A DNA stretch of 64,000 nucleotides from Macrostomum hystrix (taxonomy: Eukaryota > Animalia > Platyhelminthes): NCBI GenBank assembly GCA_950097015.1, contig CATNEN010000002.1, positions 7,874,001-7,938,000 on the forward strand. Reading direction: 5' to 3'. Positions 3,539-55,650 of the stretch are shown one piece after another (within the stretch, counting starts at the first letter, position 1; the number at the start of each line of letters is the position of its first letter). The notes below the pieces were generated by a model. That model saw only the letters and a program-made list of their open reading frames with translations, made no database searches and was not told where the DNA came from. The position numbers and the translations under genes were made by a program.

Positions 3539-4663
3539 TCAGCCTCGGCGCACCAGCCCAAAGAAGCCGCCGATCTCGCCCTCCGTCATTGTGTCGTTCA
3601 TGACGGCCACGGCCTGCACCGTTCCGTTCAGAAGTCGCGCGTCTTCATTTCGAAAACCGAGAGAGAAGCAAAAGTAATCAAGAATTTCTAGTCTCGAAAA
3701 ATTACTTCCCTGAAGTACGCTCGACTGTGGCACGAAGCCAGTAGTCAAGTAGAAGCTTCGACTCTGCGAAGACTCCGAAGTCACTCCGAGCTCAACGAAT
3801 GAGTTCGGGTCATACATGTTTGCCCATGACGCTGTTGAAAGAAACTCTGTTGCCGTTAAATTGTAGCGGACGAAGTACAGGCTCCAAGAGCCTGGAGGAC
3901 CATTCCAAAACGATGCGCCAAGGGTATTCGTGTCGCATTTGCACGTCTCCAGCAGTGGAGCCTCTCTGGTGGACACTCGCTTGAGCCTGATCAGCCACGT
4001 GAGTCCCACCTTCAAGTTGGCGAACTTCACTCCCCCAAGCCACATCTTGGATGACACTCCGTTGAACTTGGCTCCCTCGCTGCTGAACTCGACTGACTCC
4101 GACTGCCACTGCTGCGTCTCGCCGCACACCAAGTTGCTCCTGCTGGCTTCCTCATCGTCACTCATCACCCACGCTGCACGCAGCTTCGAGCCCACACTGC
4201 TCATCAGCTTCCTGCTCAGCGTCATGAAGCTGACGGCTCTGGCATTGGCGAATGCAGCACAGCTGTGCAGTGCGTTGATCCCATTGCTGGCTTGTCCATT
4301 GATGAGGTGGCACACGACAATGTACTTAAACAGCGAGCACTGGCGAGTGTCCGAGTCGAACTGGGCCACCAACAGACCGCTCTTTGTGTTGGCAGTGCCG
4401 ATGCACATGATCCTGCTCGACACTCGCCTTGCCTGCACAGCCAGTGCGACGGGCAGACACCCCAACGTCTCCACTCTGAGCCACTCGGCGTCGCTGCCGC
4501 AGTGTGCCAGCTGGGCGAGGCTCAGGAGCAAAGCGAGGCCTGAAAATTATGTTGATATTGCTCTTGTACCTTTGATTCTGGATTTCAAATCGTTCCGAGA
4601 GGAAGAACCTACTAATTGACACCAATAGAACCTCGAGCTCTGCCCACCCACTAAATAGCGCAT
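3539..4663 (-). CDS. PAN-like + LamG/ConA-like secreted protein, family copy 1 (338 aa)
   Basis: Exon1 4663-4648 (ATG CGC TAT TTA GTG G), GT..AG phase-1 intron 4647-4540, exon2 4539-3539. Spliced length 1017 nt is divisible by 3. Signal peptide MRYLVGLALLLSLAQLAHC; C-terminal LNGTVQAVAVMNDTMTEGEIGGFF resembles the LamG-like terminal motif. Confidence 0.82.
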
Positions 4664-4890
4664 GCTTTGTGCTGAAAATTGGATTTGCTCGACTGATCAG
4701 GTAAATTGGATGGGTGATTCCTCAAAAGAAGAAGCCACCAGTGTCAACGCTGGTATAAAGAATATTGGATGTTAACTTTCTGAGACTACTCGACCTTCCA
4801 GAACATAAAGTAAAAAACTTTTTAATCCTAGTTTGAATATTCTCTACTTCACTTGTCTGACTGCTAATATTAAATTCATCATTATGGTTT

Positions 4891-5200
4891 GGGGGGTGAC
4901 GGGCAGAGCGGTTAACGCGTTTGCCTCTTGCACCAAGGTCCCTAAGCTCGATTCCGCGTCGAGGCCACATTGATTTGGGACGCAGCCGCTGAGAGATGGC
5001 TTTGGGGCTTGTCGTGCAATTTATCCCTTGAGGGCCAAATTCCCAGACATGCAGTGAGAGTGTACACTGCCTAACGATGAGAAAGTCAGGGCAGATGTAC
5101 ACACCTGTGTGAACGTATTATGCCTGTTTACCGTATCTGCCTGAGTGTGTGCTTGGGAGACATCGAAATGGGCAAAATTGCTTTCTCGCTGGCTGCAGAT
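4891..5200 (+). mobile_element. tRNA-derived SINE family A, near full length
   Basis: Head with A-box-like ggcagagcggt and B-box-like agctcgattcc; body motifs gatgagaaagtcagggcagatgtacacacctgtg and gaaatgggca.aattgc recur about 11 times in the window; AT-rich tail. Confidence 0.85.
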
Positions 5201-5789
5201 ATAGTGTTATAATTATGTGCCATTGCAATAATCATATTAGTATTCTAATCAATTACTATAATAATAAAAATGACTCATAATGACTCGACAAGTGCAACAC
5301 TGTCGTTTACAAACGATATACGAAGAGACAATCGATTAGACCAGTCGTTGCAACTCACCAGCAGCGAGCTCCATTTTAATCTTTGGCGAATTCGTCTTTC
5401 GTTGCAGCCGAGATGAGCCAAATTTCGCTACACGAACCCACCAATTCTTACCTTAGTAGCTCATCTATGCTTGCTTTTGACTTTTTACATCACCCAGAGA
5501 CAAAAAAATTTTTTAATGAGGAGTGAATTGGGATGATTTTATAAGTGGAGGTGAATACTTAAAGCTCCTAATGAGCAGTCTAGCCGCTTATGCCTCACCA
5601 AGCCTCTGCAATCATACTCTATGCAGGTGCCTCAGTGCCTGCAGAAAATGTCAGCTGGAGACCTTGGTCTCTTTCCGCTTCTCTTTGAAGCACAAATTAC
5701 TCACAAAGCTGGCAAAATTTTCCACCATCCAAATCTTGAAAAACTTCCAACTAATTAGCATATGAGACATGCGCATTCTTAATTTTATA

Positions 5790-9339: not shown

Positions 9340-9450
9340 ATATATAGGGGTTCAATTCCTGATTCCACTGGAACAATTAGATTCATTTAGCAAGACACTT
9401 AACTCTGTATTGTTTTAGTTTACCCAGCTGTCAAATGGTTAACAGTATTA
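9340..9450 (+). mobile_element. Degraded CORE-like SINE (family B)
   Basis: ggggttcaattcc followed by agcaagacacttaactctg...tttacccagctgtcaaatgg, homologous to 16060-16180 and 32060-32310. Confidence 0.55.
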
Positions 9451-9790
9451 GCTACTAGGGTAGTATATTAAGGGTGTGGCTTTTCTCAAGTCTATGGACT
9501 CAACTGCCATACTATAGTATTCAGATGTACTGAGCAATAGCTGTGGCTACTTTGCTATGAAAATTATTTTTTAATGAGCATAGTTTTACAAAAATTCAGT
9601 TTTGCATTTTCACTTCAATTCAATATCTTAGCGTAATGATTACCAAAAAAGATTGTTATTTTATTTTTCATACCTCTAGTCTTATAGTTCCCAAAATTAT
9701 TTTGTTTTATTTAACATTTGCTATGCCAATAAAGAAAATGTTATTTTAGTGTCAAATATGATAACTGTTGCAACCCTCAGCTGCAGACCC

Positions 9791-12700
9791 ATGGCTGAAG
9801 AAGGGGCCCCGCCAGCTGCATTGTACAAGTTCTCCATCCTAGAACCAGATGTTTACTGCCAGGCGATTAAAAGTGCGGAGCCAGTTAAGGATGATGATGT
9901 ACCCCACAGATTTGGCCTATTTTTGAAACAATGGGCAGAGGACGTTTTCGGTATGAGCTGCTTCCTACCATCCAAAGCTGGCGCCGCCTTTATTGAGGAT
10001 TTCAACCATTTTGAGAGTGACTTCTTGGTAAAATCCGAGTACTGCATCATCATCATTAGCGAAGTGTCTGCTAAAACTCTCAACAGGTTCTTGGCCAGGT
10101 TGCTAGTGTTTGTTACCATGCGCTCAATGTGGCGTAATCGCTTTATCTTCATCGCCATGGGCGAATTCGACGGACTGAAGAGGCTTTTTCTAGACGTGTC
10201 GGTACACAAGCTAATTATTTTTAGATCAAGGACTGAGGAGGAGTGGATGGTGGAGATCGAGTGCTGGAAGGCGCTGTACTCCATTCTCAACATTTCCTGG
10301 GCACCTGTTAGCAGCACCAACGCTTATGTGGGTGCATCCACCGAGGCAGCTATAGAAGCGCATTCATGTGCCGCTGACGAGTCAGCCGAACAGCTGGATC
10401 GAACCTACAAGCTGATGCTTCTGACTTCAAGAAGCTACTCAGTTAAGAAGGCAGGCAGTGAAGATGCGGTTTCAGACATTCGTGGCGAGGCATTCGCCCA
10501 GTATATGCAGCAGAAGTCTGAAAGCGAGTTTCAAATGTCCTGCAAATTGCCTGGCGACTCTGGAGGTGCATTCATAATGGATTTCAACCGCTTTGAAAAT
10601 GATTTCCTGCGTGTTAGCGAGTACTGCGTCATCATCGTTTCCGAAGAATCTGTGCGGCAATTCCGCATCTTCTTGCCGCGCCTATTGGTGTTCTTGACTA
10701 GACGCGGCAGCTGGAGCAACCGCTTCGTAATTGTCTGCGTTGGCAGCGTTGATCTGCGCGAGTCTGAGGTAGACTTTCTGACCCATCCTCCTGTGTACTT
10801 CTCATCTACTGAGGTGGAGTCTTGGTCTGCCGAAGTTCAGTCTTGGCAGCTCTTGTACCGCATCTTGCGCATCACTTGGGCGCCTTCTGACACTGAGAGC
10901 CAGCTTGCCAAAATGTCCTTTGACACGGAGACATCGTATCACTGTGTGCTGTTCACATCAATTTTTTATTCGACCTCCGCTGCGGAACAGCCTGACGATG
11001 GTACCGGCTGGCAGTTTGGATCGTACTTTGCTTCTACAATGAGCACCGAGTTCAACTACTCGATTTATATCCTGACTGCTAGAGACGCAGTGCAGATCGA
11101 TAGTCTCGAGGAGCTAAAGCTTCGCTTTCTTAGAAAGTGTCGCAATCTAGTTATTATTGTGACTGAGGAGTCGGTTCTGCAGTTTTTGCAATTCCTTATA
11201 CGCTTAAGACAGTTTCTGGCCAATCACACTGACTGGAAGGATCGACTCGCTCTGGTATGTGTTGGTAATGTGCGCTTAGAAGAAGATCAGCTTTCTATGT
11301 TTAGCTCTGTGACTACTATCCAATCTACTTCTCGCTCTAGTTGGACAACTATCACTACACAAACCTGGAGTAACCTTCTGACATTAATTCAGAATAGCGA
11401 GGCCTATGTCCAGGACCAGTTGGTTCAACAGGTTTCTTCGTTGCCCGTCAATACAAGAGCTCACGACAGCACCGACGGTGGCGGATTGCAGTCATTAGAT
11501 ATTAACACATCGATGCAAAACACCGCTTCAAGTAGCCGCTCTAGCTCTAACAGCACAGGGGCAGACAGATCAAGACAAACCACAGCTACCACAACAATAC
11601 ATACTACAGTTCCGACACGCACCACGTCTTCTATCGATGTCGCTGACTCTACCTCACAAGAGGAAAACATTGAGGGACGCCGAAGCATCTTGCAGGGTTC
11701 GTCGAGCTCAGAAAAACAGCAAAGTCAGAGCCATATGCAGGAGCGTCAGCGACAGGAAGAGCAAGAGCGTCAGCGTCAGGAAGAGCAAGAGCGTCAGCGT
11801 CAGCAACAGGAAGAGCAAGAGCGTCAGCGTCAAGAAGAGCAAGAGCGTCAGCAACAGGAAGAGCAAAAGCGTCAGCGTCAGCAACAGGAAGAGCAAAAGC
11901 GTCTGCGACAGGAAGAGCAAGAGCGTCAGCGTCAAGAAGAGCAAGAGCGTCAGCGTCAGCAACACGAAGAGCAAGAGCGTCAGCGTCAGCAACAGGAAGA
12001 GCAAGAGCGTCAGCGTCAGCGACAGGAAGAGCAAGACCGTCAGCGTCAGCGTCAGGAAGAGCAAGAGCCTCAGCGTCAGCGACAGGAAGAGCAAGAGCGT
12101 CAGCGCCAGGAAGAGCTACAGTCTACAACTACGACGAGTACTTCTACCACTACAATTAGAACAACAGGTTGCGACGATGAGTCAATGAACCTAAAAAATG
12201 TTCCGAAAGTAGACGATATCGCGCGCCGATCGGACGAAGACATCAGTATCGAGTACGAATTCGAGGATAGAGGAGTTCGCTCTGGCGGCCAGCGAAAAGA
12301 TTACGTTGTCGTCGACCTGGGCGACTCCAGTCACTTTGCAAGCAGTTCATCCGCTTCTATCGTGGTGATGCGAGCGCTGAGAACAGTTCAAGTTCGCATT
12401 GTGTGCATTACAAGTGTAGTTCACACAACCACCGTCGTAACAGTCACATATATCGTGCATCTTGCTGGTGTGCCGTTCAGAGCGGCTCGCTGCGCTGCTG
12501 CTTACGCTCAACAGCAAGGCTGGCTGCGTTGGCTGCTGCTGATTTTGCACCGCGTTGGGCGACTTACGAGCGAATCGATTCGCTGCGTCTCCGGCAGTCG
12601 CATCAGCATTGACAAAAATGATAGCGTCGACTCGGATCGCGTTACTGTTAACGCGAGCAGCCGACGTCGCCAGCTTCCTGGCTGGCTGGTGCGTATTGTT

Positions 12701-13440
12701 TTCTACGTCTCTGGCCGTTTCATTGCCTGCAGAGATGAGGCCGAAGTCAAGATGAAGACAGCACGACAAGAAGTTAAGGCTGGAACCACGTATGCCTCGG
12801 CTGCAGCCGGGCTGACCGTGACAGAATGGCGTGATGAGAACTGCGCCATGTGTCATCAGCTGGTTGTCTCTGGGCTGGCGCGCGTCAGGCGGGGAGGGGA
12901 GGGCTGTCCGTACAGCGGAACCAGCTTCTGGGCCAACGCAACACGTAAGTGGCTTTTAACATTCGGGGAAGTGAACATTTTTTGAATAATTTGGCTATTT
13001 AATTGACTTAAATATACTATTCTAACCAAAGAGAGTAAATCAGCCCCTCGTGTTTCATTTATCCAGGCCGAGCCTACTACTGGACCGATGCGCTTAGCGA
13101 TCGGCTTCACGTCTATTCTCGGCGTCGCGCCATTGCTCACGGCGTCCTCTGCCTGCCGTTCTTGGCCGCCGGGCCGGGCCTGCTTGCTGGGCTGCGCTCC
13201 GCTCTGCTGGGTTTGGCCAACTCGGCCGTGTTCATCGGCCAGGCCGAGCCCAGCGAACCACTGAGCGGCGCCTCTCTCGACGGAGGCTCGTCCGCCGCTG
13301 CCGCCGCCGGCCCAGACGGGCTGGCGCTGCCCGCCGGTAAGGTGTGGATCAATCCGCTATTGTATCGGAAAGCGGAAAGCGAATCGGAGCGCGAGGCCTT
13401 CGCTTTGCGCTACAATCGGAGATTCTTTCAGATCGGCTGA
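9791..13440 (+). CDS. Large protein (~1175 aa) with three tandem TIR/SEFIR-like domains, S/T linker, Q/E/R coiled-coil repeat and unknown C-terminal region
   Basis: First in-frame ATG 9791 (MAEEGAPP) follows a cag acceptor. Exon1 9791-12944 ends at a gtaagt donor (phase 1); acceptor ttatccag at 13066; exon2 13067-13440 stays in frame with the track ORF 13162-13440. Three internal repeats share Y-x-F/L-x-I/L, F-x-x-Y/F, (S)xYCxIIVSEES, FLxRLxxFL, W-x-x-RF/L-x-x-V-C-V-G and W..L motifs in TIR-like beta/alpha order. Confidence 0.68.
11737..12118 (+). repeat. Coding tandem repeat (QEEQERQR-type) forming a predicted coiled coil
   Basis: Repeated caggaagagcaagagcgtcagcgt units in frame inside the TIR-like ORF. 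Confidence 0.9.
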
Positions 13441-21527: not shown

Positions 21528-23317
21528 ATGAACTTTCCTCCGCCTTCATCAACGGCCGGCTTCGCCTGCTCTGGCAACGAGGCAGCCGACGAAGTAGATT
21601 ACGTAGACGCCGACTCGCAGAAGCTGGTGGACTTGATGGACCTCGGCCCGACTGTCCTGTGCGACCGGGCCCTGCTCAACAATGACACGGCCCAGGAGGC
21701 CCTCTGCCACGCTAGGCCTCATCAGCGCCAGCTCGTGCCCTGCGGCTTCGTTTCGCCGCCGCTGCACGTGTTCGTCTGTCTGGACCGCTGCGTGCGCCTG
21801 CGCCGTATCGAGCTGTGCCCCGCCTACGCCCGCCACCGCCTGCGCAGCGCCCAACTGCTTGGCGCCGCTGCCCAGTCGCAGCCGCTGACTTGCCTTCTCG
21901 CCCGCCTCAAAGCCGGCCGCACCGACCTCACAGCTGAGCTGGTGGCCCGCGAGCTGGACGCCTGCCCGGGCCTCGTCCGCCTCGCCAACCTGCGCTTCCC
22001 CCCAGACCGGCGCCGCTGCGGCTTCGACGTGGCTCCGCCTGCTGGCGCTCGAATTCGCGTCGCCGTCCTGCGCATCACCGGCGTCCAGCCGGGCTGCCTG
22101 CCGGCCTTTCGCGGCCTCCGCCTGCTGGCCGACGCCGAAGAGGTCACCGGCTGGCCGCCTGCCTTCAAAGTGGCGTCGGCTTCGCCGAACCCAGTCTCAT
22201 CGCCATTGTTGTCGCAGTCTTTGATCATTGCGCCGTCTCCTTTGATGTCGCCGCCACTGCCGGCGTCTTACGAGGCGTCTCCGCCGGCCTCGCGTTCACC
22301 GACACCGCCGGAGGAATTCGTAGATCCGATCACGTGCGAGCTGATGCAGACACCCGTGCTGCTGCCCTGCGGCAAGAGCGTGGACCAGGCCACCCTGGCC
22401 CGCTGTCACCAGGCCATGGACCCCTTCACCGGCCTCGCCTTCACTCAGGTAAGGCTGGGGCAGCGTTTGACTCTGCCAAGACAGTTGCGCAGTAATTAAT
22501 CAGTTGGTTGTCAGTGGCAGAGCGGTAACGTATTCGCCTTTCGCACCAAGGTCCCTGAGCTCGTTTCCGCGGCGAAGCCTTATTAATTTGAAGCGCAGCC
22601 GCTGTGAGAAGGCTTTGGGGGCTTTTCATGCAATTTACGCCCTTTAGGGCCAACCTTCAAGGCACAGTGAAAGTGCCCACTGCCTGAAGATGAGAAAGTC
22701 AGGGCAGATGTACACACCCTGTGTTCGCATGTGCCTGTGTACGGGATCTGTGTGCGTGTGAGCGGAATGGGCAGAACTGCCTCCTCAGTGGCTGCAGGTC
22801 TACTGTCACCAAATGGTGTGCCATCGCCTGCAGCCCTCCTGCAATTATTTTTATATTATGGGTAGTCAGTTAGTTTTTTCGCCTCCAGGACCGTCGCCCG
22901 GTGTTCAACTCGGCGCTGAAGCTTCGCCTCGATGACTACCTGGCAGCGCGCAGGCGCAGAAAGCGAGCCGCCCAGACAGCGGCCGCCGAGACCGCCGCGG
23001 CCCGGGCCTCGGCCAAGAGGCGCCGCTGGTTCCTGCCGGCCGACCTGGATCCCTACAGCCAGCTGGCGCCATTGCCGGAGTCCAGCTGCCAGCTGTGCAA
23101 CGCCAAGGACACCCGCCACGCCTGGTACCGCGTGCCCTGTTCGCGCGATCGGGTCATCTGCTACGCCTGCCGCATGTCAATCAGCGTGATGTCCTGCAAG
23201 CTGTGCTACTCCACCCACACCCAGGCCGAGTTCCGGGCCAACAAGCTACCGATTGACAGCGATTCTGGCCGAGATGGCAGCGGCGGCGGTGATGACTGGT
23301 CTGGCTATCTGTGCTGA
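21528..23317 (+). CDS. UBOX5: U-box domain-containing protein 5 / RING finger protein 37 (449 aa)
   Basis: Exon1 21528-22448 (gtaagg donor, phase 0), exon2 22889-23317. U-box [30 protein letters not shown]...[17 protein letters not shown] and C-terminal RING-like CxxC...PC...CxxC...CxxC match the UBOX5 architecture. Confidence 0.88.
22510..22860 (+). mobile_element. SINE family A in the UBOX5 intron
   Basis: agtggcagagcggt head, gagctcgtttcc B-box-like motif, full body and ttat tail. Confidence 0.85.
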
Positions 23318-23365
23318 CTGGAACTGACTTTGTCACTATGTCACAGAATCTGACTTGGCACGGAC

Positions 23366-23670
23366 AGAATCTGACATGCCACTGACTGAACCTGACATGC
23401 CACTGACAGAACCTGACATGCCACTGACAGAATCTGACATGCCACTGACAGAATATGACATGCCACTGACAGAACCTGACATGCCACTGACAGAACCTGA
23501 CATGCCACTGACAGAACCTGACATGCCACTGACAGAACCTGACATGCCACTGACAGAATCTGACATGCCACTGACAGAATATGACATGCCACTGACAGAA
23601 TCTGACATGCCACTGACAGAACCTGACATGCCACTGACAGAACCTGACATGCCACTGACAGAATCTGACA
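23366..23670. repeat. 21-bp minisatellite (gaa(c/t)ctgacatgccactgaca), about 14 copies
   Basis: Direct inspection; explains the 7-aa-periodic ORFs on both strands. Confidence 0.92.
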
Positions 23671-24289
23671 TGGCACTTGGAATTGCTAGGTTTCTAGACC
23701 GTTGTCATGCCGTGAAATATTCGCTAAGTCTATCGCATATACTCGTATCTAGTATTAGTGTGGGTAGCTGAGGTAGCTGAACCCAGTACAGTGCAGTGAA
23801 TTTCGCTTCCACGCCTTGCTTTGCTAGCCAGCGCTTCTGCCCGCCATTCGATTTCTTGATGATTTGGTCTCTGAAATGTTTAGCTTAGATACTGTAGCCT
23901 ACTGTACTGTATGAAAATCGATATTCAGGTCTTGTTTTTGTGTACAGCCCCTGCGCTATCGATGCGTGCGACCATATTCTGTGGCATTCTTTTCTGAAGC
24001 AATTTTAACCGCGCTAAATAAAGCATTCTATATTGTTTCCTGCCTTGTCTTGCTGTTGTAATATTTGCCTTCATGAATTGCAGTTCGCAATGCAGAAATC
24101 AAACAGCAGTCACTGAGATGCCTGTTAAATGCCTGTGTTCTAAATTAGCCAAAACGGTGTCGTGGGCGGTGATAATCTTAATGGAACTCAAGCTAAACTC
24201 GAGTTCAATTTCAGCTTGAGCCGCTCTCGTATTATATATTGCGACTCACAAAATTTTTAATCCGCATCTTCTGAAACAAGAATCAAGTC

Positions 24290-26995: not shown

Positions 26996-28107
26996 ATGCG
27001 CGGGGTTACTGGTCAGTAAAGAGCAACGAGTCTGCTCACGCTGCTCATACAAGAATACAATCATTAAGAATCCTTATTCAGCCACAATTACGGTCTTCAC
27101 TTTCAGAAATAATTTCGATTCTGCTCCTGAGCCTCGCCCAGCTGGCCCGCTGCGGCAGCGAGGCCGAGTGGCTCAGGGTGGAGACGTCACGGTGTCTGCC
27201 CGACGCTCTGGCTCTGCAGACAAGGCGAGCGTCAAGCAAGATCATGTGCATCGGCATTGCGAGCACAATGAGCGGTCTGTTGGTGGCCAATTTCGACTCG
27301 GACACTCGCCAGTGCTCGCTGTTTAAGTACATTGTCGTGTGCCACCCCATCAATGGACAAGCCAGCAATGGAATCAACACACTGCACAGCTGTGCTGCAT
27401 TCGCCAATGCCAGAGCCGTCAGCTTCATGACGCTGAGCAGGAAGCTGATGAGCAGTGTGGGCTCGAAGCTGCGTGCAGCGTGGGTGATGAGTGACGATGA
27501 GGAAGCCAGCAAGAGCAACTTGGTGTGCGGCGAGACGCAGCAGTGGCAGTCGGAGTCAGTCGAGTTCAGCAGCGAGGGAGCCAAGTTCAACGGAGTGTCA
27601 TCCAAGATGTGGCTGGACAATGTTCGCTTCGGTGAGGTGCAGCGGGGGCTCACTTGGCTGGTGCGGCTGAGGCAGAGCGAAGCTGGACCATTAATTGTGA
27701 ATTATGAGTGCGGCACGAAAGTTGTAAGGTTCTATCTCTACACTGGAATATCAAGTTTTTATGGACCGGTTTTCTTCAGAAACAACAGAACGTCGGACGG
27801 ATTCGCAGTTATGTGGGAGTCAAACATTTTTTCATCCAACAGTTTTGTTGACTTTGCAGTCATCTCGCCTTCTCAGGATGCGAATGAGCTAAGCATGATC
27901 CACAACTCAATTGCGGCTCCTAAATTTGAGTTTTATGTGCTGAGCATCGGCTACGAGGAGGCGTTTCAGAACTCAACATCCTGTTTCACTCTTGGTTTCG
28001 GCCATGAGAATGATTTTGTGCTGAATGCCACCGTGCGAGCCGTAGCTATTTACAATGATACTTCGAATGAAACTGAGACAAGCGATTTCTTCAAACTGAT
28101 GCACTGA
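26996..28107 (+). CDS. PAN-like + LamG/ConA-like secreted protein, copy 2 (338 aa)
   Basis: Exon1 26996-27011 (ATG CGC GGG GTT ACT G|gtcagt), acceptor ctttcag 27106, exon2 27107-28107; spliced length 1017 nt. Confidence 0.82.
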
Positions 28108-33032: not shown

Positions 33033-34114
33033 ATGGGTCTTCTCGCAAGTGAGTCGAATGCATGGCATTTTAAATTAGGGAAAAGCGACACTAAAGCCCT
33101 CAATTCCTGAAAAAGTCATACAACATTTCAGGTGTTGCTTTGTTTTCGCTCCTGAGCCTCGCCCAGCTGGCCCGCTGCGGCAGCGAGGCCGAGTGGCTCA
33201 GGGTGGAGACGTCACGGTGTCTGCCCGACGCTCTGGCTCTGCAGACAAGGCGAGTGTCAAGCAAGATCATGTGCATCGGCATTGCGAGCACAATGAGCGG
33301 TCTGTTGGTGGCCCAGTTCAACTCGGACACTCGCCAGTGCTCGCTGTTCAAGTACATTGTCGTGTGCCACCTCATCGATGGACAAGCCAGCAATGGAATC
33401 AACGCACTGCACAGCTGTGCTGCATTCGCCAATGCCAGAGCCGTCAGCTTCATGACGCTGAGCAGGAAGCTGATGAGCAGTGTGGGCTCGAAGCTGCGTG
33501 CAGCGTGGGTGATGAGTGACGATGAGGAAGCCAGCAAGAGCAACTTGGTATGCGGCGAGACGCAGCAGTGGCAGTCGGAGTCAGTCGAGTTCAGCAGCGA
33601 AGGAGTCAGCTTCTATGTCGAGTCGTCAAAAATGTCGATGGAAAACGTGGATTTTGGCGAAAATCATCAGGGGCTTTCTTTTATGCTTAGAATGAGGCAT
33701 GGTGATCCAGGTTTAATTCTCACAAAAGTTAAATGTGACTTGTCAGCAATCTGGTATAGTCTTATGAAACCAGATTCGGAAAACAAGTTATTTTTTTTAA
33801 GAAACTTTGGTTTTTACTTGGGTAGCACTGAATCTTGCCCGTTCAACTCTCGTGATTTTGTCGATTTAGCTGTCATGTCGCCTTCAATGAACATGAGTCA
33901 GGTTCTGTTCGCTTGCAACTCACAGTTTTATAGTTCACACAGTGATCTCGGCTATACCTATGGAATCAAGCCGAGTGTTAGTTCTCCTGATTGCTTAACT
34001 TTGGGAGCAGTCGACTCAGCTGGAGAAGTTAACAGCACGATACGGGCAGTGGCCATTGCGAATGACACCCTGAGTGAGACTGAAATCAGCGACTTCTTCG
34101 GCCTGGTCCGCTGA
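33033..34114 (+). CDS. PAN-like + LamG/ConA-like secreted protein, copy 3 (332 aa)
   Basis: Exon1 33033-33048 (ATG GGT CTT CTC GCA A|gtgagt), acceptor catttcag 33131, exon2 33132-34114; spliced length 999 nt. Confidence 0.85.
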
Positions 34115-35022: not shown

Positions 35023-35689
35023 TCAAGACTGTTTTTTTCTGTTGGATTGAATTCATAATTGAAATCTGAATCGTTCTTGTTCGGCAAATGAAAGCATATT
35101 TTTAGCCACATCAATTTCCTTCAGCCAGAGTATCAACTAGTGCCTAGCTAAAAAACTGTAGATTTTTTGCGGATAAAAACTATCTAAATAAAATGCTTTC
35201 ACTGTTGCATCAAATCTCACTGATTCTGGTGATCCGATTGTAGAAGATGCTTTGTGAGGCCTACACACCTTTTTTATTTTGGAAGCTAGCTGAGCAGCAG
35301 TGAAAAAGTGAACAGAAGAGCTAGCGAAGCGAACCACCTGCAGCCACCGGTGCGGAGTAAGAGCGATGTGGTTAGGAAACAATGAAAGCTTCGTCTGTCA
35401 CTTCAGCTTGCGAGCCAACTGCCTGGCTAGCTCCGCTTGAAGATACTGACAAAACTAAGTGTTTTCAAGCATAACCCCTGCAGTCAGATTGAAAAAATGA
35501 TCATCTATGCTCAGAATTGTAGCTTTTCGTAATTAAAATAATATTTTATACGAGAAACTCAAATTTAATAACTTCTTGACTGCTTGAAACGTTTTTTGAA
35601 GTTATTTTCTCGGAATTGTCCTTCGCGACCAAATCTGCGACCTTACTATGCACAATGGGCATTAAACAAAAATGTACATGTATATGCAG

Positions 35690-36020
35690 GAGGGCTGCTG
35701 GCACATCATTTGGTTACACTCGACTCGCAGCCAGCGGGCAGGCAAGTCTGCCCATTCGGCTGACACCTGAGCCCACACGCACACAGATACCGTACGCAGC
35801 ATGCGCTCCCACAGGTTTGTACACCTGCCTGACTTTCTCATCATATAGGGAGTGTACACTACCACTGTGCCTTGAAGGTTGGTCCTCCAGGGCTTAAATT
35901 GCACGAAAAGCCCGGACGCCTTATCAACGCCCCAGATTAATATGGCCTCGACCCGGAATCGAGCTCATGGACCTTGGTGCGAGAGGCAAACACGTTGGAC
36001 GGCTCTGCCACTCACCCCCT
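35690..36020 (-). mobile_element. SINE family A
   Basis: Reverse complement of the family A head and body. Confidence 0.85.
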
Positions 36021-38194: not shown

Positions 38195-39459
38195 ATGAAA
38201 GCAGAGTTTGGTAAGTCTAACATTTTCATTATTTCCCTCCAAATAATAGCACAAGAAAGCACCTTTTAGAATAATTAAGTAACTTGTTCTATGTCCGAGT
38301 TGATAACTTAACTTTTAGATTTTAGACAGTAACTTTTAGACTTTGAGTATTAATCCTTACACCATTTCAATCAATTATTCTAAACCGGTAAAGACTGTAG
38401 ATATTAACTCTGCAGTTAGAAGAGAAATCGGAAAGTCTTCTCATTTTTTTTCGCTTTTCAGTAAAATTCGTACTCTGCTTGGCTCTCCTCGCCCAGCTGG
38501 CCGGCTGCGGCAGCGAGGCCGAGTGGCTCAGGGTGGAGACGTCACGGTGTCTGCCCGACGCTCTGGCTCTGCAGACAAGGCGAGCGTCAAGCAAGGTCAT
38601 GTGCATCGGCATTGCGAGCACAATGAGCGGTCTGTTGGTGGCCAATTTCGACTCGGACACTCGCCAGTGCTCGCTGTTCAAGTACATTGTCGTGTGCCAC
38701 CTCATCAATGGACAAGCCAGCAATGGAATCAACGCACTGCACAGCTGTGCTGCATTCGCCAATGCCAGAGCCATCAACTTCATGACGCTGAGCAGGAAGC
38801 TGATGAGCAGTGTGGGCTCGAAGCTGCGTGCAGCGTGGGTGATGAGTGACGATGAGGAAGCCAGCAAGAGCAACTTGGTGTGCGGCGAGACGCAGCAGTG
38901 GCAGTCGGAGTCAGTCGAGTTCAGCAGCGAGGGAGCCAAGTTCAACGGAGTGTCATCCAAGATGTTGCTTGAGAACGTGGAGTTCGCTAACTTGGGACTT
39001 GGGCTTAGTTGGCTGTTCAGGCTCAAGCGTGCGGCTTACGGGGCCGTGATCATGGAGAGCTACAAGTGTGACACTAAGGAAATTGGGAGCTGCTTTTGGG
39101 ATGGAGCTCCATCATCAAACGGTCTCTACGCCTCAAGATATGACCTAAACACAGTGGAGTTCTTGACAGACGCCTCGACAAACAGTTACGACCCGAACAT
39201 TTTCATTGAAGTTGGACTCACTTCATCATCCCCTCAGAGCAGAAACTTCTTCTCCAACTCAGGATTCGTGGCACCAGCCAAAGTGACGCAGGGTGCAGCA
39301 TTTGTGAAATCTTCAATGATGGATTTTTACTGCCTCTCCCTCGGGCTACGGCTTCTGGGCACTTGGCCCAAGTTGAATGGATCGATCCGCTCGGTTGCAA
39401 TCATGAACGACACAATGAACGAAGCGGAGATCAGCAGCTTCTTCGGTCTGGTGCGCTGA
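38195..39459 (+). CDS. PAN-like + LamG/ConA-like secreted protein, copy 4 (337 aa)
   Basis: Exon1 38195-38210 (ATG AAA GCA GAG TTT G|gtaagt), acceptor cttttcag 38461, exon2 38462-39459; spliced length 1014 nt. Confidence 0.85.
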
Positions 39460-39688: not shown

Positions 39689-40100
39689 ATATAAAAATGT
39701 GAGGATCAGCTGTGGCTCTTGTAGAAACAGCAGCTTACTCGTAATTCTACCATATAAAAATGTGAGGATCAGCTGTGGCTCTTGTAGAAACAGCGGCTTC
39801 ACTCTACCATATAAAAATGTGAGGATCAGCTGTGGCTCTTGTAGAAACAGCGGCTTCACTCTACCATATAAAAATGTGAGGATCGGCTGTGGCTCTTGTA
39901 GAAACAGCGGCTTCATTCTACCATATAAAAATGTGAGGATCAGCTGTGGCTCTTGTAGAAACAGCGGCTTCATTCTACCATATAAAAATGTGAGGATCAG
40001 CTGTGGCTCTTGTAGAAACAGCGGCTTCACTCTACCATATAAAAATGTGAGGATCGGCTGTGGCTCTTGTAGAAACAGTGGCTTCATTCTACCATATAAA
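39689..40100. repeat. 57-bp minisatellite, about 7 copies
   Basis: Unit atataaaaatgtgaggatcagctgtggctcttgtagaaacagcggcttcactctacc; gives 19-aa-periodic ORFs. Confidence 0.93.
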
Positions 40101-40329
40101 AACTTCGGGCTTTGTTGTCTATTGTTGGATGTTTGTTTATTCTGCCGATACGTTGTTTTTCTGTTTCCCAGGACAAGAGGGGGTTTGCTGTGAATCAATG
40201 CAATAAATGAATGTGGGCCCCTCCCGATCGTAAAAGAAAATTTACATTCGTAGTAACGAAACGGGCCATCAAATTTTTTAAATAATTAATGTCATTAAAA
40301 ATAGTATAAGGGATCTAAGGAGACGAGTT

Positions 40330-42034: not shown

Positions 42035-43129
42035 ATGCATCTAATAGCATGTGAGTAAGAAGTACTGTGGAGATATAGTCTCATAAATAAAGAATGGTAC
42101 TATGAACTGAATTTAATTAAACTAAAATCGCATTCAGGTGTTGCTTTGCTTTCGCTCCTGAGTCTCGCCCAGCTGGCCCGCTGCGGCAGCGAGGCCGAGT
42201 GGCTCAGGGTGGAGACGTCGCGGTGTCTGCCCGACGCTCTGGCTCTGCAGGCAAGGCGAGTGTCGAGCAAGATCATGTGCATCGGCATTGCGAGCACAAT
42301 GAGCGGTCTGCTGGTGGCACAGTTCGACTCGGACACTCGCCAGTGCTCGCTGTTTAAGTACATTGTCGTGTGCCACCTCATCGATGGACAAGCCAGCAAT
42401 GGGATCAACGCACTGCACAGCTGTGCTGCATTCGCCAATGCCAGAGCCGTCAGCTTCATGACGCTGAGCAGGAAGCTGATGAGCAGTGTGGGCTCGAAGC
42501 TGCGTGCAGCGTGGGTGATGAGTGACGATGAGGAAGCCAGCAAGAGCAACTTGGTGTGCGGCGAGACGCAGCAGTGGCAGTCGGAGTCAGTCGAGTTCAG
42601 CAGCGAGGGAGCCAAGTTCAACGGAGTATCCTCAAAGATGTCGATGGACAATGCGGATTTCGGTGAAACTGAGCAGGGACTCTCGTTGCTGTTTAGGATC
42701 AGGCAGAGTGGAAAAGGGAGAATCATCAGAAAATTTCAATGCGTTCCTGTGATACTTTGGTACGAGTTAGCCTACCCGTTTGATAATCATGTGAGCTTTG
42801 AAAGACACGACCACGTGAATATTGGCTTTATTGATTACTTTGACTCGTGCCACCCTGACACTGGAGGTTTCGTTGAGTTCGCTGTCCATTCGCCGTCAAT
42901 GGATGGGAATCAGGTTGAGTTCTTTTGCTACGCAAACACTACCAGTCCAAAGTTTACTCTTAAGATAGGTATATCCAAGTTCAGCCTGAGCGCTTCGGCA
43001 TGCTTTACTCTGGGAAGCACACCCTATCCTGGAGAACCCTGGTTGAACGGCACCATTCGGGCTGTGGCCATCTCGAACGACACCCTCACTGAGTCTGAGA
43101 TCAACGACTTTTTTGACCTGGTTCGCTGA
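42035..43129 (+). CDS. PAN-like + LamG/ConA-like secreted protein, copy 5 (335 aa)
   Basis: Exon1 42035-42050 (ATG CAT CTA ATA GCA T|gtgagt), acceptor cattcag 42137, exon2 42138-43129; spliced length 1008 nt. Confidence 0.85.
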
Positions 43130-43329
43130 CTGGATCGCAATTGGAACAGCTCGCAAAATGTAAAATTATACGCAGAAACTTTTTTCGACCTGACTGCATC
43201 TCCAGACAAAAAAATGCCTTTTTTCAGCATAGTTGGGCGCGAGTGTGTTAGAGTGAGCTGCAGACTCGACAACGTTTTGCCTCTATTTTGCCTCTTCTTC
43301 GATTTTTTGCACAAATCCACAATAAATCT

Positions 43330-44665
43330 ACAATCTAGTCATGGGCTCGAATCCACAATCTAGTCATGGGCTCGAATCCACAATCTAGTCATGGGCTCGA
43401 ATCCACAATCTAGTCATGGGTTCGAATCCACAATCTAGTCATGGGCTCAAATCCACAATCTAGTCATGGGCTCGAATCCACAATCTAGTCATGGGCTCGA
43501 ATCTTCAATCTAGTCATGGGCTCAAATCCACAATCTAGTCATGGGCTCGAATCCACAATCTAGTCATGGGCTCGAATCCACAATCTAGTCATGGGCTCGA
43601 ATCCACAATCTAGTCATGGGCTCGAATCCACAATCTAGTCATGGGCTCGAATCCACAATCTAGTCATGGGCTCGCATCCACAATCTAGTCTTGGGCTCAA
43701 ATCTTCAATCTAGTCATGGGCTCGAATCCACAATCTAGTCATGGGCTCAAATCCACAATCTAGTCATGGGCTCAAATCCACAATCTAGTCATGGGCTCGA
43801 ATCCACAATCTAGTCATGGGCTCGAATCCACAATCTAATCATGGGCTCGAATCCACAATCTAGTCATGGGCTCAAATCTTCAATCTAGTCATGGGCTCGA
43901 ATCCACAATCTAGTCATGGGCTCGAATCCACAATCTAGTCATGGGTTCGAATCCACAATCTAGTCATGGGCTCAAATCCACAATCTAGTCATGGGCTCGA
44001 ATCCACAATCTAGTCATGGGCTCGAATCTTCAATCTAGTCATGGGCTCAAATCCACAATCTAGTCATGGGCTCGAATCCACAATCTAGTCATGGGCTCGA
44101 ATCCACAATCTAGTCATGGGCTCGAATCCACAATCTAGTCATGGGCTCGAATCCACAATCTAGTCATGGGCTCGAATCCACAATCTAGTCATGGGCTCGC
44201 ATCCACAATCTAGTCATGGGTTCGAATCTTCAATCTAGTCATGGGCTGGAATCCACAATCTAGTCATGGGCTCAAATCCACAATCTAGTCATGGGCTGGA
44301 ATCCACAATCTAGTCATGGGCTGGAATCCACAATCTAGTCATGGGCTGGAATCCACAATCTAGTCATGGGCTGGAATCCACAATCTAGTCATGGGCTCGA
44401 ATCCACAATCTAGTCATGGGCTCGAATCAACAATCTAGTCATGGGCTCGAATCCACAATCTAGTCATGGGCTCAAATCCACAATCTAGTCATGGGCTCGA
44501 ATTTACAATCTAGTCATGGGTTCGAATCAACAATCTAGTCATGGGCTCGAATCCACAATCTAGTCATGGGCTCAAATCCACAATCTAGTCATGGGCTCGA
44601 ATTTACAATCTAGTCATGGGTTCGAATCAACAATCTAGTCATCGGCTCGAATTTACAATCTAGTT
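43330..44665. repeat. 25-bp satellite (caatctagtcatgggctcgaatcca), about 53 copies, plus a few detached units at 44896-44960
   Basis: Direct inspection. Confidence 0.97.
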
Positions 44666-45559: not shown

Positions 45560-45900
45560 AGGGGGAGAGTGGCAGAGCGGTAAACGCGTTTGCCACTCGC
45601 GCAAAGGTCCCTGAGACCGATTCCGCAGCAAGGCCACATTCATTGGTCGTTTTGTCGTGCAATTTACGCCCTTGAGGGCCAACCTCCAAGGCACAGTGAA
45701 AGTTTACACAGCCTGACGATCAGACAGTCAGGGCAGATGTACACACCTGTGAGAGCGAATGGTATCCATGTGCGTGTGTGCTCATGGGTGGGCAGAATTT
45801 GCTTCCTCGCTGGCTGCGGGTCTAGCGTCACCAAATGATGAGCCGTTGCCAGAAGCCCTCCTGCAATTATTATTACTATTATTATTATTGACATATTGTC
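45560..45900 (+). mobile_element. SINE family A
   Basis: gggggagagtggcagagcggt head, full body and (tta)n tail. Confidence 0.85.
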
Positions 45901-47309: not shown

Positions 47310-47600
47310 GAGGCCTGAGGTCACTGAGCTCGATTCCGCGGCGAGGCCACATTCATTTGGAGCGCAGACGCGGAGAGAAAGCTTGGGGCTTGACGCGCAG
47401 TTCATCATTTTTTGCCCTTGACTGCCAACCCCTAAAGCACATTGAGGGTGTACTCTACCTGGCGATGAGAAAATTAGGGCAGATGTACACCTGCGTGAGA
47501 GTATGCCTGCGCACGGCGTCTGTGGCCTGTGTGCTCATGAGTCAGTGGAATGGGCAGAATCCTCGCTGGGTACGTGTCTGCTGTCACCAAAAGTTGTGCC
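47310..47600 (+). mobile_element. SINE family A, 5'-truncated
   Basis: gagctcgattccgcggcgaggccacattcatttgg and downstream body motifs. Confidence 0.75.
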
Positions 47601-48767: not shown

Positions 48768-49926
48768 ATGCGTGTCCTCGAAGGTAAGTTGGCTGGGAAA
48801 TCTTTTGCAAGATTGGATGGCAAAACATTACCACCATCTTTTATGCAGCTGTTAACGTTTTCACGATATCCAATAACTAATAAATTAAACGATCGAGTTT
48901 AATTAATAAGAGGATAACACTTTTTCAGGTCTCATTGTTTTTTCGCTCCTGAGTATCGCCCAGCTGGCCCGCTGCGGCAACGAGGCCGAGTGGCTCAGGG
49001 TGGAGACGTCACGGTGTCTGCCCGACGCTCTGGCTCTGCAGACAAGGCGAGTGTCGAGCAAGATCATGTGCATCGGCATTGCGAGCACAATGAGCGGTCT
49101 GTTGGTGGCCCAGTTCGACTCGGACACTCGCCAGTGCTCGCTGTTCAAGTACATTGTCGTGTGCCACCTCATCGATGGACAAGCCAGCAATGGAATCAAC
49201 GCACTGCACAGCTGTGCTGCATTCGCCAATGCCAGAGCCGTCAGATTCATGACGCTGAGCAGGAAGCTGATGAGCAGTGTGGGCTCGAAGCTGCGTGCAG
49301 CGTGGGTGATGAGTGACGATGAGGAAGCCAGCAAGAGCAACTTGGCGTGCGGCGAGACGCAGCAGTGGCAGTCGGAGTCAGTCGAGTTCACGAGCGAGGG
49401 AGCCAAGTTCAATGGAGTATCCTCAAATATGTCGATGGACAATGCGGATTTCGGTGAAACTGAGCAGGGACTCTCACTGCTGATCAGAAAAAAACAATTT
49501 GGTTCAGGAATGATTTTCACGAAAATTACATGTGGCACGGATCTAATGTGGTACTGCCTCTTCAAAACGAAATTGTCTTCTGATGAACAGACTAGTTTTT
49601 CAAGACACAGCATTTTAGACACGGTTTTCTTTGTTGCCGCGGAATTGTGCGACATTTACTCAGAAGATTTCGTTGATCTCGCAGTCATCTCACCGTCAAT
49701 GAATAAGAGTCTGGTTCAGTTCAACTGCAACTCAGAGTATTACGGTCTGCAAGATGAATTTGATTTTCCTCTAGAAAAGCCAGTTCTGGATTCACCCTCT
49801 TGTTTATACTTGGGAGCATACACTCCTGAAGATCTCACATTCAACGGCACCATCCGGGCGGTGGCCATTGCGAACGACACCCTAACTGAGGCAGAAATCA
49901 GCAAGTTCTTTATCACGGTTCGCTGA
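48768..49926 (+). CDS. PAN-like + LamG/ConA-like secreted protein, copy 6 (337 aa)
   Basis: Exon1 48768-48783 (ATG CGT GTC CTC GAA G|gtaagt), acceptor tttttcag 48928, exon2 48929-49926; spliced length 1014 nt. Confidence 0.85.
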
Positions 49927-50433
49927 ATGGATCAGTACTATCCTAATCTAAATCAACAATGCCGACAATGTTCTCGATCTGACTGCAGCTCTGAAATCGA
50001 ACTGTATGTGGCTGCTGTGCTCAAACGCAGCAATGATGTGAGCCATATTGAACGATTGTCAAGTAGATCAGAAGTTCTCCGCACAAAGGAAAAATATAAA
50101 GTGTTGCTCACTCACAGCTGAGTGATCATATGGAGGCATGCTCGGTGCATCAACCAGGAAGTTACACCAGCATTATACGAGCATAGATATCGAGCATTAT
50201 GCAGTGCTCAACTTTTCATTTCTGCCTGCATTAGGAATTTGAATTTGTGACATTTTCTGATGCTTTTGCGCAACTTGTCAGCGAAACAGCTCAAAGAAGG
50301 CTTTGATCTCTGTTTCGGCCATTGTGTCATGCAAATAGGAGACAGCGCTCACTGTTCCGCTCGACACTCGTCATTCGTCCTTCAGGAATCCAGCAGTTTC
50401 TGCTTTGACTTTGCATAGCAGTCTCAGAGACGC

Positions 50434-50662
50434 ACGATAGGTGACACGATAGGTGACACGATAGGTGACACGATAGGTGACACGATAGGTGACACGATAG
50501 GTGACACGATAGGTGACACGATAGGTGACACGATAGGTGACACGATAGGTGACACGATAGGTGACACGATAGGTGACACGATAGGTGACACGATAGGTGA
50601 CACGATAGGTGACACGATAGGTGACACGATAGGTGACACGATAGGTGACACGATAGGTGACA
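50434..50662. repeat. 12-bp perfect tandem repeat (acgataggtgac), about 19 copies
   Basis: Direct inspection. Confidence 0.97.
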
Positions 50663-50969
50663 CCGTCGGTGAAGAACAACCTGCTGTCTGGTGAAGCATT
50701 GAAGAACCTTCTTAAACAAAATTCTCAGTTTAATGCTGTCAGGCATCAGTTTGTAGTACTTACTTTCGACTTTCGTCTTTTCTACTTTCGTCTTGTAGTA
50801 AATTTACAACAGATCTTAAGGAGCTTCCATCTTCAAAAGCCGCGTTTCAGTGTTTTAAGTTTGTGATGCATTTTGAAGGTCTGAATGGCGCAAACTTCGA
50901 TTGCACTATGAAGACAGAAAAAAGAAAAAAGAATGAAGAAAGAAGAAGTAAGTACGAGAAAGAAAGACC

Positions 50970-52284: not shown

Positions 52285-53195
52285 TGGGTTGGGTTGGTGA
52301 GGAAGGGTTGGTGAGGATGCGTTGGTGAGGATGCGTTGGTGAGGATGCGTTGGTGAGGATGCGTTGGTGAGGATGCGTTGGTGAGGATGCGTTGGTGAGG
52401 TTGGGTTGGTGAGGATGGGTTGGTGAGGATGCGTTGGTGAGGATGGGTCGGTGAGGATGGGTTGATGAGGATGGGTTGGTGAGGATGGGTTGATGAGGAT
52501 GGGTTGGTGAGGATGGGTTAGTGAGGATGGGTTGGTAAGGATGGGTTCGTGAGGATGGGTTGGTGAGGATGGGTTGATGAGGATGGTTGGTGAGGATGGG
52601 TTCGTGAGGATGGGTTGGTGAGGATGGGTTGATGAGGATGGTTGGTGAGGATGGTTTAGTGAGGATGGGTTGGTGAGGATGGGTTGGTAAGGATGGGTTC
52701 GTGAGGATGGGTTGGTGAGGATGGTTGGTGAGGATGGGTTCGTGAGGATGGGTTGGTGAGGATGGGTTGATGAGGATGGTTGGTGAGGATGGTTTAGTGA
52801 GGATGGGTTGGTGAGGATGGGTTGGTAAGGATGGGTTCGTGAGGATGGGTTGGTGAGGATGGGTTGATGAGGATGGTTGGTGAGGATGGTTTAGTGAGGA
52901 TGGGTTGGTGAGGATGGGTTGGTGAGGATGGGTTCGTGAGGATGGGTTGGTGAGGATGGGTTGATGAGGATGGTTGGTGAGGATGGGTTAGTGAGGATTG
53001 GTTGATAAGGATGGGTTGGTGAGGATGGGTTGGTGAGGATGGGTTGGTGAGGATGGGTTGGTGAGGATGGGTTGGTGAGGATGGGTTGGTGAGGATGGGT
53101 TGGTGAGGATGGGTTGGTGAGGATGGGTTGGTGAGGATGGGTTGGTAAGGATGGGTTGGTGAGGATGGGTTGGTGAGGATGGGTTGGTGAGGATG
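52285..53195. repeat. 14-bp G-rich satellite (gggttggtgaggat), about 65 copies
   Basis: Direct inspection. Confidence 0.95.
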
Positions 53196-53507
53196 GCTTC
53201 TTCGGAAAAAGCAGGCGTTATAATCTTGTTGGATTTCCTTGTATCGAGGCTTCAGCAGCAATCAGACCGATTTAGTTAAAATAGAGGAATTCTTGTGTGC
53301 TTGTCTGCTCGGAGCACACCCTATTGGTGGTAGGTGAGGCTGCATTATGAATAAAATACAAGCACTCATTATATATCGACTCTTTAATAGTGGAGGCAAT
53401 AGCAACGCAGAAAGTTAGTGACGATTTTGAGTGTAAAAAATACTTTGAGCATTTCAACAAGAAAAAAATATTTTTTAATCTTCACAACAAAACCTGCTTT
53501 TTCACTA

Positions 53508-54830
53508 ATGCAATTTATAGCAGGTGAGTTACACGACTCAGTCTCTGAATTGTATAAATGCACCCCATGAAAAACTAGCGTCTAGCCCGTGTTTAGGACC
53601 AACTGACTTGACTTGAGTTTGCTGCAAGGGCATCTTTCAGACGAAGCAGGGAGGCGTTGCCGACCATCCCGCTAGCCCCTGGCGACCACGGGCAACTAAA
53701 GCTGCGCGGGTGTCGCGCAGGAGGATTCAGTGGTGCCGGCTTCCATGGCGCGGTACTCCTCCGGAGAATCCAGGAGGTGGAGAGTCGATCGCCCGGTGGC
53801 CCTTAGTTAACGGACGAGCTGGCAGATATTCTCAGGCCTGACTTGAGCGTGATTCTCTGAAAATGTTGGAGAGGTCCGGGTTTGGTCGGAGGTTGGTGGG
53901 CCTGTCCTGAATGAAAGGTGGGGCAGTCGCAAATGAAATGCTCCGCATTCGCTACATGGGAGGGGCAGAAAGGGCACTCACCCCTGAGTATTTTGTTTGG
54001 AGGTAGCGATGCCAAGCGAAACAACCATGGCCAGAGAGGGCCATGGTGACTGCCCTGGTGTCGCTGGTGTTGAGTCCAAGCAGGGCTTTGCGGAGGGCAG
54101 TGGACGGCATGGAACAGCAGCGCGAGACTGCCGACAATCGGCGTTGTTGATCCACCTGTCCTTGTGCTTCGATGCGACCCACTGGTTAATCCGAGAGGTG
54201 ACGTCGGCGGTAGGGGTGAAGACCGCAGGTAGGGGGCCAAAAAGCGATCTTGTCAAACCGGCCTTGGCAAGGCTCTAGCCGAGTTTAGGACCAACTCAAC
54301 AAACAAATTTCAGGCCTCGCGCTGCTGCTGAGCCTCGCCCGGTTGGCCCGCTGTGCCAGCGAGACCGAGTGGTTCAGATTGCAGACGCCAATGTGCCTGC
54401 CCGACAACATGGCTCTGCAGACACCCCGGCTAGTGTCGGGCAAGCTCGTGTGCATCGGCATTGCGAGCACAATGAGCGGTCTGTTAATGGTCCAGTTCGA
54501 CTCGGACACTCGCCAGTGCTCGCTGTTCAAGTTCACTGAAGTGTGCCATCTTATCACGGGACAAGCCAGCAGTGCCAGCAGCTGCGCTGCATTCGTCGAT
54601 GCCCGAGTGACGAGTGATGATGAGGAAGCCAGACAGAGCAGATCCGTGTGCGGCGAGGTACAGCAGTTGAATCTGGATTCAGGCAGCGCCGATCTCATGG
54701 AAGGACTCACTCCATGAGAGAATGAGTGAGCCAGCAGCGATGGAGCCAGGTTTCGATGGGAACTTCTCAAAGATGTGGCTTGACAATTCGATGAGTATAT
54801 CGAATATCTAAACATAAGCACGAGTCTATT
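53508..54830 (+). pseudogene. PAN-like + LamG family copy 7, pseudogene with a LINE in intron 1
   Basis: Exon1 53508-53523 (ATG CAA TTT ATA GCA G|gtgagt), acceptor aatttcag 54313. Exon2 has an internal deletion (FVDARVTSDDEE), a stop at about 54717, and a frameshifted SSDGARFDGNFSKMWLDN remnant. Confidence 0.8.
53605..54282 (-). mobile_element. 5'-truncated LINE (second family) with target-site duplication
   Basis: Encodes a C-terminal CPFCPSHVANAEHFICDCPTF knuckle; exact 14-bp TSD gtttaggaccaact at 53591-53604 and 54283-54296; caagt-repeat tail. Confidence 0.85.
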
Positions 54831-55156
54831 AATGAGCTTAGATTAAGGATTCAGTGCTGTAATTCCCCACAATGAACCGACCCTGACTTCATGAGGCTGC
54901 AAGATGCGCGAATATTTCGGCAAAGTAAAGAATTTTTAAAACAAGAACTAAATTTGAGGAATCATTCACCAGAAATGTTGTCAACTGCCATCAAATCTCT
55001 CGTTTTCGGTGTAAATTTATTAGATTTGTTATTAATTAATCAGTACTACATTCATGGAGGACATTCGTTTACACAATGTACGTCACCTTAGTTCACTGAT
55101 CTGAGCGACACATTCGTAAGAAACTTTTCCTTGCGAATTCTAAATTTTCAAGCCAT

Positions 55157-55650
55157 TTAGTTTTGACAAACTAAATGGCTCGTGAACTCCACTGACTCCG
55201 ACTGCCACTGCTGCGTCTCGCCGCACACCAAGTTGCTCCTGCTGGCTTCCTCATCGTCACTCATCACCCACGCTGCACGCAGCTTCGAGCCCACACTGCT
55301 CATCAGCTTCCTGCTCAGCGTCATGAATTTGACGGATCTGGCATTGGCGGATGCAGCACTGCTGTATAGTGCGTTGATCCCATTGCTGGCTTGTCCATTG
55401 ATGAGGTGGCACACGACAATGTACTTGAATAGCGAGCACTGGCGAGTGTCCGAGTCGAACTGGGCCACCAACAGACCGCTAATTCGATCAGCCGCCAACA
55501 CGCTGTCGGGTGCTGAACTTGACGATCCTGTTCTTAGCGCCAGAGAGTCGCTTAGGCACCGCTGGGTCTCCAGTCTGCGCCACTCCGAGGGGCAGCCGCA
55601 GCTGGCCAGCTGAGCGACACAGGCGAATGTCAACAAGCTGCCACTGCATT
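55157..55650 (-). CDS. PAN-like family copy 8, truncated: constant region only, no LamG core
   Basis: Diverged signal/N-terminus, near-identical cassette from SGLLVAQ to ESVEFTS, then HLVCQN*. First exon uncertain (candidate ATG GCT GCA GAT AAA GC near 55777, phase 2). Could be a pseudogene. Confidence 0.55.

Follow-up and report, generated by a model that had tools for sequence, protein, structure and literature searches.

An Old Cluster of Putatively Secreted Jelly-Roll Proteins in Macrostomum hystrix with an Internal Tract Probably Homogenised by Gene Conversion

A 64-kb window of the Macrostomum hystrix genome (64,000 nucleotides; assembly GCA_950097015.1, contig CATNEN010000002.1, positions 7,874,001 to 7,938,000 of the forward strand) contains, for a single protein family, six intact two-exon genes as well as a degraded copy, a truncated copy, and an additional relic of a C-terminal end; all coordinates below are positions within this window. 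In the ~335-residue proteins, a signal peptide precedes a disulfide-rich N module of ~85 residues, which a linker helix connects to a ConA-like/LamG jelly roll of ~215 residues. Based on the comparisons described here, the genes are likely to represent an old paralogue cluster in which a tract of ~470 bp is homogenised by gene conversion. An earlier note, made from the letters of the window alone, had described eight copies of a constant/variable family. All eight were recovered where it had placed them, and the starts it had proposed are real ATGs.

A Near-Identical Tract within Divergent Paralogues

Among the six intact copies, the ~470-bp internal island shows 93–99% DNA identity (Table 1), and a 60-column window starting at about position 42464 of copy 5 is 100% identical across all six. 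Sliding-window nucleotide identity, a check that the earlier note had proposed, reveals sharp edges: the mean pairwise value is 0.25–0.35 over the promoter, exon 1, and the intron, which are unalignable, jumps to at least 0.94 over ~42150–42600 of copy 5, and then drops to 0.4–0.5. Amino-acid identity among the copies is 88–97% over residues 22–172 and 26–51% beyond. The near-invariance claimed for the N-terminal cassette holds, with copies 3 and 5 differing at exactly 2 of 133 residues from ETSRC to SSEG, and the scaffold motifs listed for the remainder are visible in the alignment of the copies.

Synonymous divergence (dS, NG86 method) ranges from 0.01 to 0.155 in the island, from 0.2 to 1.5 in the signal-peptide codons, and from 0.8 to saturation in the C-terminal part (C part, ~165 codons). 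Synonymous sites in the island are closer than protein-level constraint can keep them, which argues that it has been homogenised, in agreement with the proposal of the earlier note that conversion acts on the constant part. Starting in the middle of the signal peptide, the island takes in the Cys-rich N module, the linker helix, and ~50 residues at the front of the jelly roll. Its end, near mature residue 150, falls past the first three or four jelly-roll strands, and the island therefore matches no domain boundary. Its 3' ends are staggered among pairs of copies, lying between positions 607 and 707 of the copy 5 query. The GC content at third codon positions (GC3) is 0.76–0.79 in the island, compared with 0.45–0.62 in the C part, while that at the first two positions (GC12) is similar.

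An origin of the islands in collapsed or consensus-polished repeats of the assembly is extremely improbable, considering that every island has substitutions of its own (52 variable sites among 476 alignment columns) and is embedded in unique flanks, and that the same pattern is present in independent assemblies from other samples.

Tree Comparisons Support Gene Conversion

The histories of the two regions were compared by phylogenetic analysis. Summed over all branches, the island tree measures 0.14 substitutions per site and the C-part tree 3.40. The island tree groups copies 2 and 4 (90%), whereas the C-part tree groups copies 1 and 4 and, separately, copies 3, 5, and 6 (100% each); the island topology is rejected by the C-part data in the approximately unbiased (AU) test (p 0.0017). 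Within the island, the four-gamete test reveals incompatibility in 20 of the 66 informative site pairs. In family-wide trees, the M. lignano homologue P0006 nests with copies 1 and 4 on the basis of the C part (85%), and environmental relatives also fall within the diversity of the window. On the basis of the island, the window copies all fall into one collapsed group distinct from M. lignano (97%). Such clustering of islands by species and of C parts by lineage, seen here with one M. lignano locus in the comparison, is the signature of concerted evolution.

Several results weigh against this interpretation. The reciprocal AU test, of the C-part topology on the island data, is not significant (p 0.094), and a permutation test in the island resembling the pairwise homoplasy index (PHI) gave p 0.46, with 12 informative sites and no power. 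Between species, dS is 0.24–0.34 in the island part (52 codons) versus 0.9–1.6 in the C part; some synonymous constraint or GC-driven convergence may lower the island value, or the M. lignano gene may not be a strict orthologue. For the protein, assignment of the N module to the PAN/apple type suffers from weak Z scores and a poor model (see below).

The low between-species dS of the tract would also be expected if the island were kept by functional DNA or RNA, such as an antisense gene or an RNA element, rather than by conversion. An antisense frame is indeed stop-free through the island in all six copies (160–242 codons) and in the M. lignano sequence L001 (173 codons). However, the six islands are not independent observations, and the antisense frame was rejected as a signal because shuffling of synonymous codons reproduces an equally long one in 20% of trials. 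Environmental relatives have only 96–118 antisense codons. Furthermore, the island is 22–30% diverged between species (74–78% DNA identity to M. lignano) but only 1–7% within the genome, and maintenance by a DNA or RNA function is considered very improbable.

Gene conversion would operate as follows. Repeated exchange between loci would keep the internal tract of ~470 bp at 93–99% identity, and its reach would include a truncated pseudogene as well as the inverted copy, which lies at a distance of over 22 kb. The tract may be self-limiting, with conversion starting and resolving only where the copies are still similar, and these stretches would also be the best conserved at the protein level across the family. 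Its raised GC3 may be a product of GC-biased conversion. The paralogues themselves are ancient, since divergence has reached saturation in the flanks, in exon 1, in the intron, and over the last two thirds of the jelly roll, and the C-terminal bodies represent long-lived lineages under moderate purifying selection.

Copy 8, in which homology (55183–55620, minus strand) extends no further than the island's 3' edge and two conserved Cys are missing, consists of a diverged 5' part and a 3' stretch of 298 bp (55183–55480) that is 96.6% identical to copy 1, suggesting that pseudogene fragments join conversion. In copy 7, the island homology (54324–54790) shows ~78% identity and contains deletions of 12 nt and ~69 nt, a 42-nt insertion, and stop codons. 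Copies 7 (plus strand) and 8 (minus strand) lie tail to tail, ~400 bp apart, both ending near the island 3' edge; this layout may be what a rearrangement between islands in inverted orientation left behind. It was also considered whether copy 8 and the relic at 50281–50370 form one split gene. On that strand, no middle portion of a jelly roll was found between them, and they were therefore treated as separate relics.

Both the mechanism and the fold (see below) are of known kinds, and the locus is a fairly ordinary instance of region-limited gene conversion. Secreted families of the conotoxin kind, in which a conserved leader is joined to a divergent mature part, offer a looser parallel. In contrast to these, the tract described here is internal, has diverged sequence on both sides, and crosses a domain boundary, and the divergent part is ancient. 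The locus provides a sharply bounded and quantified case of part-gene conversion with a GC3 signature, in an animal group little studied for genome evolution.

The Divergent C Part Is Old and Moderately Constrained

The earlier note had described the region following the cassette as hypervariable, in the sense of fast diversification, and had named purifying selection with only old divergence as the finding that would speak against it. This is what was observed. Pairwise ratios of nonsynonymous to synonymous divergence (dN/dS) in the C part are 0.2–0.6, with no whole-region value above 1. Sliding 30-codon windows reach 1.5–2.4 at alignment columns ~251–295, only in comparisons involving copy 5. 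The origin of the C-part lineages precedes the divergence from M. lignano. The C part is therefore a case of ancient paralogue divergence under moderate constraint, not of demonstrated hypervariability.

These values bear directly on the possibility of an adaptive constant/variable repertoire, in which conversion is favoured for keeping one end of the protein uniform while positive selection diversifies a ligand-binding face, after the manner of recognition families in immunity or reproduction. The constant-plus-variable layout that this scenario predicts is real, a dN/dS of 0.2–0.6 is high for a folded domain, and the elevated windows involving copy 5 could be read as local diversification, yet these peaks are confined to 30-codon windows in a single lineage, and the diversity is old, with lineages that predate the M. 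lignano split. The scenario also has to accommodate a constant tract that cuts through the jelly roll and matches no module. Likewise, the suggestion that the constant part is an effector end is at odds with a tract that extends over the first strands of the lectin-like domain.

Environmental relatives are informative on both sides of this question. Five contigs (L002–L006; JGI/ENA, from different samples) also carry DNA islands of 100% identity amid segments of 50–70%, as an adaptive repertoire would lead one to expect, but their position is not that of the M. hystrix tract: the identical islands cover the signal peptide, the rear half of the N module, and the start of the jelly roll, whereas the front half of the N module varies. 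An environmental relative is only ~37% identical at the protein level, and the mosaic recurs with different borders; such shifts favour a history of conversion over a fixed functional design. Taken together, an adaptive repertoire is considered unlikely. From the constant/variable family as initially conceived, the layout, the jelly roll, and conversion are retained, while diversifying selection and the effector end are not.

A related and somewhat more doubtful proposal is that the mosaic is a selected feature across macrostomorph flatworms, re-formed independently in each species, and that it constitutes a germline-encoded repertoire of secreted receptors that have one surface for docking or assembly in common but differ in their ligand specificities, many of them old. 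The common surface may in that case be formed by the N module together with the opening strands of the jelly roll, and recognition of microbes, mucus, or mating partners would be possible roles.

On the main interpretation given here, the proteins would be secreted proteins that bind a glycan or another ligand, with a specificity that differs among the old C-terminal lineages. If these lineages do have different ligands, the family would serve as a model for conversion and long-term paralogue divergence within one domain.

Protein Architecture and Fold

The six intact copies encode products of 332–338 residues with a signal peptide. An N-terminal hydrophobic core, the lack of a second hydrophobic segment in any of the six products, nine Cys kept in all of them, and a pair of conserved N-x-S/T sites close to the C terminus are the sequence features from which we infer that the proteins are secreted and soluble; secretion had also been supposed in the earlier note.

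The fold was predicted with AlphaFold2 for mature copy 5, using a 24-sequence family alignment (predicted local distance difference test score, pLDDT, 85; predicted template modelling score, pTM, 0.80). In the model, mature residues ~98–314 form a two-sheet beta-sandwich jelly roll that aligns with carbohydrate-binding domain 4 of the Geobacillus arabinanase AbnA (5hon), its best fold match, with a VIA-align Z score of 19.1 and a root mean square deviation (rmsd) of 2.8 Å over 180 residues; 131 chains match at Z scores of at least 8, and Foldseek concurs (E 2.2e-8). Other matches include pentraxins, the thrombospondin N-terminal domain, and CBM40 sialic-acid modules (Z 14–17), as well as the LG domains of laminin and neurexin (Z 11–12). 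Sequence identity to these members of the ConA-like lectin/glucanase superfamily is only 7–16%. The structure prediction nevertheless agrees with the ConA/LamG-like fold that had been proposed from motifs. Unlike the jelly rolls it was compared with, that of the present family is fused to a small Cys-rich N module.

Sequence searches contributed little to the fold assignment. A Pfam scan of the six intact copies returned nothing beyond a Laminin_G_3 (PF13385) match of at best 16.3 bits, below the 27.6-bit cut-off, which covers the last ~38 residues in two of the six copies, and searches of PDB sequences with single proteins and with a profile yielded nothing useful.

The N module spans mature residues ~1–85 and contains five invariant Cys and an F-x-Y hairpin motif. 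In the full-length model, residues 11–60 reach a pLDDT of 86–95 and follow a beta-beta-alpha-beta-beta order; modelled alone, the module has a pLDDT of 50. In a structure search with this poor model, PAN/apple domains account for 10 of the 16 best chains among 48,161, with Z scores of 2.2–4.7 (the top PAN/apple values being 4.7, 3.9, 3.6, 3.2, and 3.1). The matches include the MANEC domain of HAI-1 (the top match, Z 4.7), the plasminogen N domain (3.6), the leech antiplatelet protein (3.2), the HGF N domain (3.1), the Sarcocystis lectin SML-2 (2.9), the Toxoplasma lectin MIC4 (2.3), and factor XI (2.2). The Pfam PAN models gave no match to 14 family N modules at E values up to 10, and an N-module profile found no match among PDB sequences. 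The PAN-like label given by the earlier note is thus weakly supported by the predominance of PAN/apple folds among the structural matches, though not by the size of the Z scores (4.7 or less), the stand-alone model, or the Pfam search, and the modelling weakly suggests a module of PAN/apple type.

Relatives of the Family

An exhaustive phmmer search of 1.84 billion representative proteins gave 19 matches, to which a profile search added few. All are M. lignano proteins or derive from short environmental contigs, except for one generic bacterial LamG_3 protein, and the only named homologues are those of M. lignano. Literature searches found no description of the family, and the paper on an in situ hybridisation screen of M. 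lignano seminal fluid does not mention lectin, laminin, or PAN domains. With this cluster, the ConA-like fold class would accordingly gain a secreted family that is lineage-restricted and has no name as yet.

Two database entries require comment. Three reading frames are needed to align the M. lignano homologue at L001:9680–10648 (NIVC01000195), which is annotated from an internal Met as a protein of 215 residues; it is either a pseudogene or affected by assembly indels. In the UniRef entry A0A1I8F1U2, a similar gene seems to have been joined, with a frame shift, to a SPATA6 gene.

Array Layout and Gene Models

The intact genes share one structure. In all six, exon 1 consists of the ATG and 13 further coding bases and is followed by a GT donor, a phase-1 intron of 83–251 nt, a (T)TTCAG acceptor, and a stop-free second exon of ~1 kb in phase with exon 1. 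Copy 1 has the opposite orientation, and housekeeping genes (CK2-beta, GCN5L1, PIG-H, and a U-box gene) lie between it and the main array; the U-box open reading frame (21528–22499) is 68% identical to a M. lignano protein. Copies 2–6 are arranged head to tail at a spacing of 3.8–6.7 kb, followed by the degraded copy 7 and the truncated, inverted copy 8. Apart from a ~330-bp dispersed repeat and unrelated satellites, the intergenic DNA between copies has no sequence in common, which indicates that the duplications are old. The relic on the minus strand, overlooked by the earlier note, adjoins a perfect 12-bp satellite at 50433–50663.

Table 1. Gene copies, relic, and homogenised islands in the window.
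Feature	Coordinates	Strand	Details
Copy 1, intact, 338 aa	3539..4663	-	exon 1 4648-4663, intron 4540-4647, exon 2 3539-4539
Copy 2, intact, 338 aa	26996..28107	+	exon 1 26996-27011, intron 27012-27106, exon 2 27107-28107
Copy 3, intact, 332 aa	33033..34114	+	exon 1 33033-33048, intron 33049-33131, exon 2 33132-34114
Copy 4, intact, 337 aa	38195..39459	+	exon 1 38195-38210, intron 38211-38461, exon 2 38462-39459
Copy 5, intact, 335 aa	42035..43129	+	exon 1 42035-42050, intron 42051-42137, exon 2 42138-43129
Copy 6, intact, 337 aa	48768..49926	+	exon 1 48768-48783, intron 48784-48928, exon 2 48929-49926
Copy 7, pseudogene	53508..54830	+	candidate 16-nt exon 1 with GTGAGT donor at 53508
Copy 8, truncated	55157..55650	-	front half only (profile positions 2-151)
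Relic, last 27 residues of jelly-roll tail	50281..50370	-	profile positions 298-324, E 1.5e-4
Island in copy 1	4042..4534	-	95.3% to copy 5
Island in copy 2	27123..27677	+	97.8% to copy 4 over 27132-27623
Island in copy 3	33148..33648	+	95.0% to copy 2
Island in copy 4	38487..38986	+	
Island in copy 5	42148..42662	+	
Island in copy 6	48941..49482	+	97.0% to copy 5

Other Features of the Window

The ~330-bp dispersed repeat, probably a non-autonomous mobile element, occurs in both orientations and at 70–88% identity at 4891–5226, 22510–22859, 34704–35020, 35685–36019, and 45561–45886, with further copies at 47318–47600, 56620–56987, 60686–60875, and 62709–63007. The unrelated intergenic satellites are located at 43325–44664, 52290–53196, 28912–29275, 39689–40102, and 23343–23677; their units are 25 bp (54 repeats), 14 bp and G-rich (65 repeats; GC skew 0.52), 52 bp (7 repeats), 57 bp (7 repeats), and 21 bp (16 repeats).

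Two additional open reading frames lack a Pfam match, one of 386 residues at 1669–2829 and one of 1078 residues at 9749–12985 (plus strand), the latter containing an internal 54-bp coding repeat at 11742–12116. The first 4,000 positions of the window (1–4000) have a GC content of 61–72%, compared with ~46% elsewhere.

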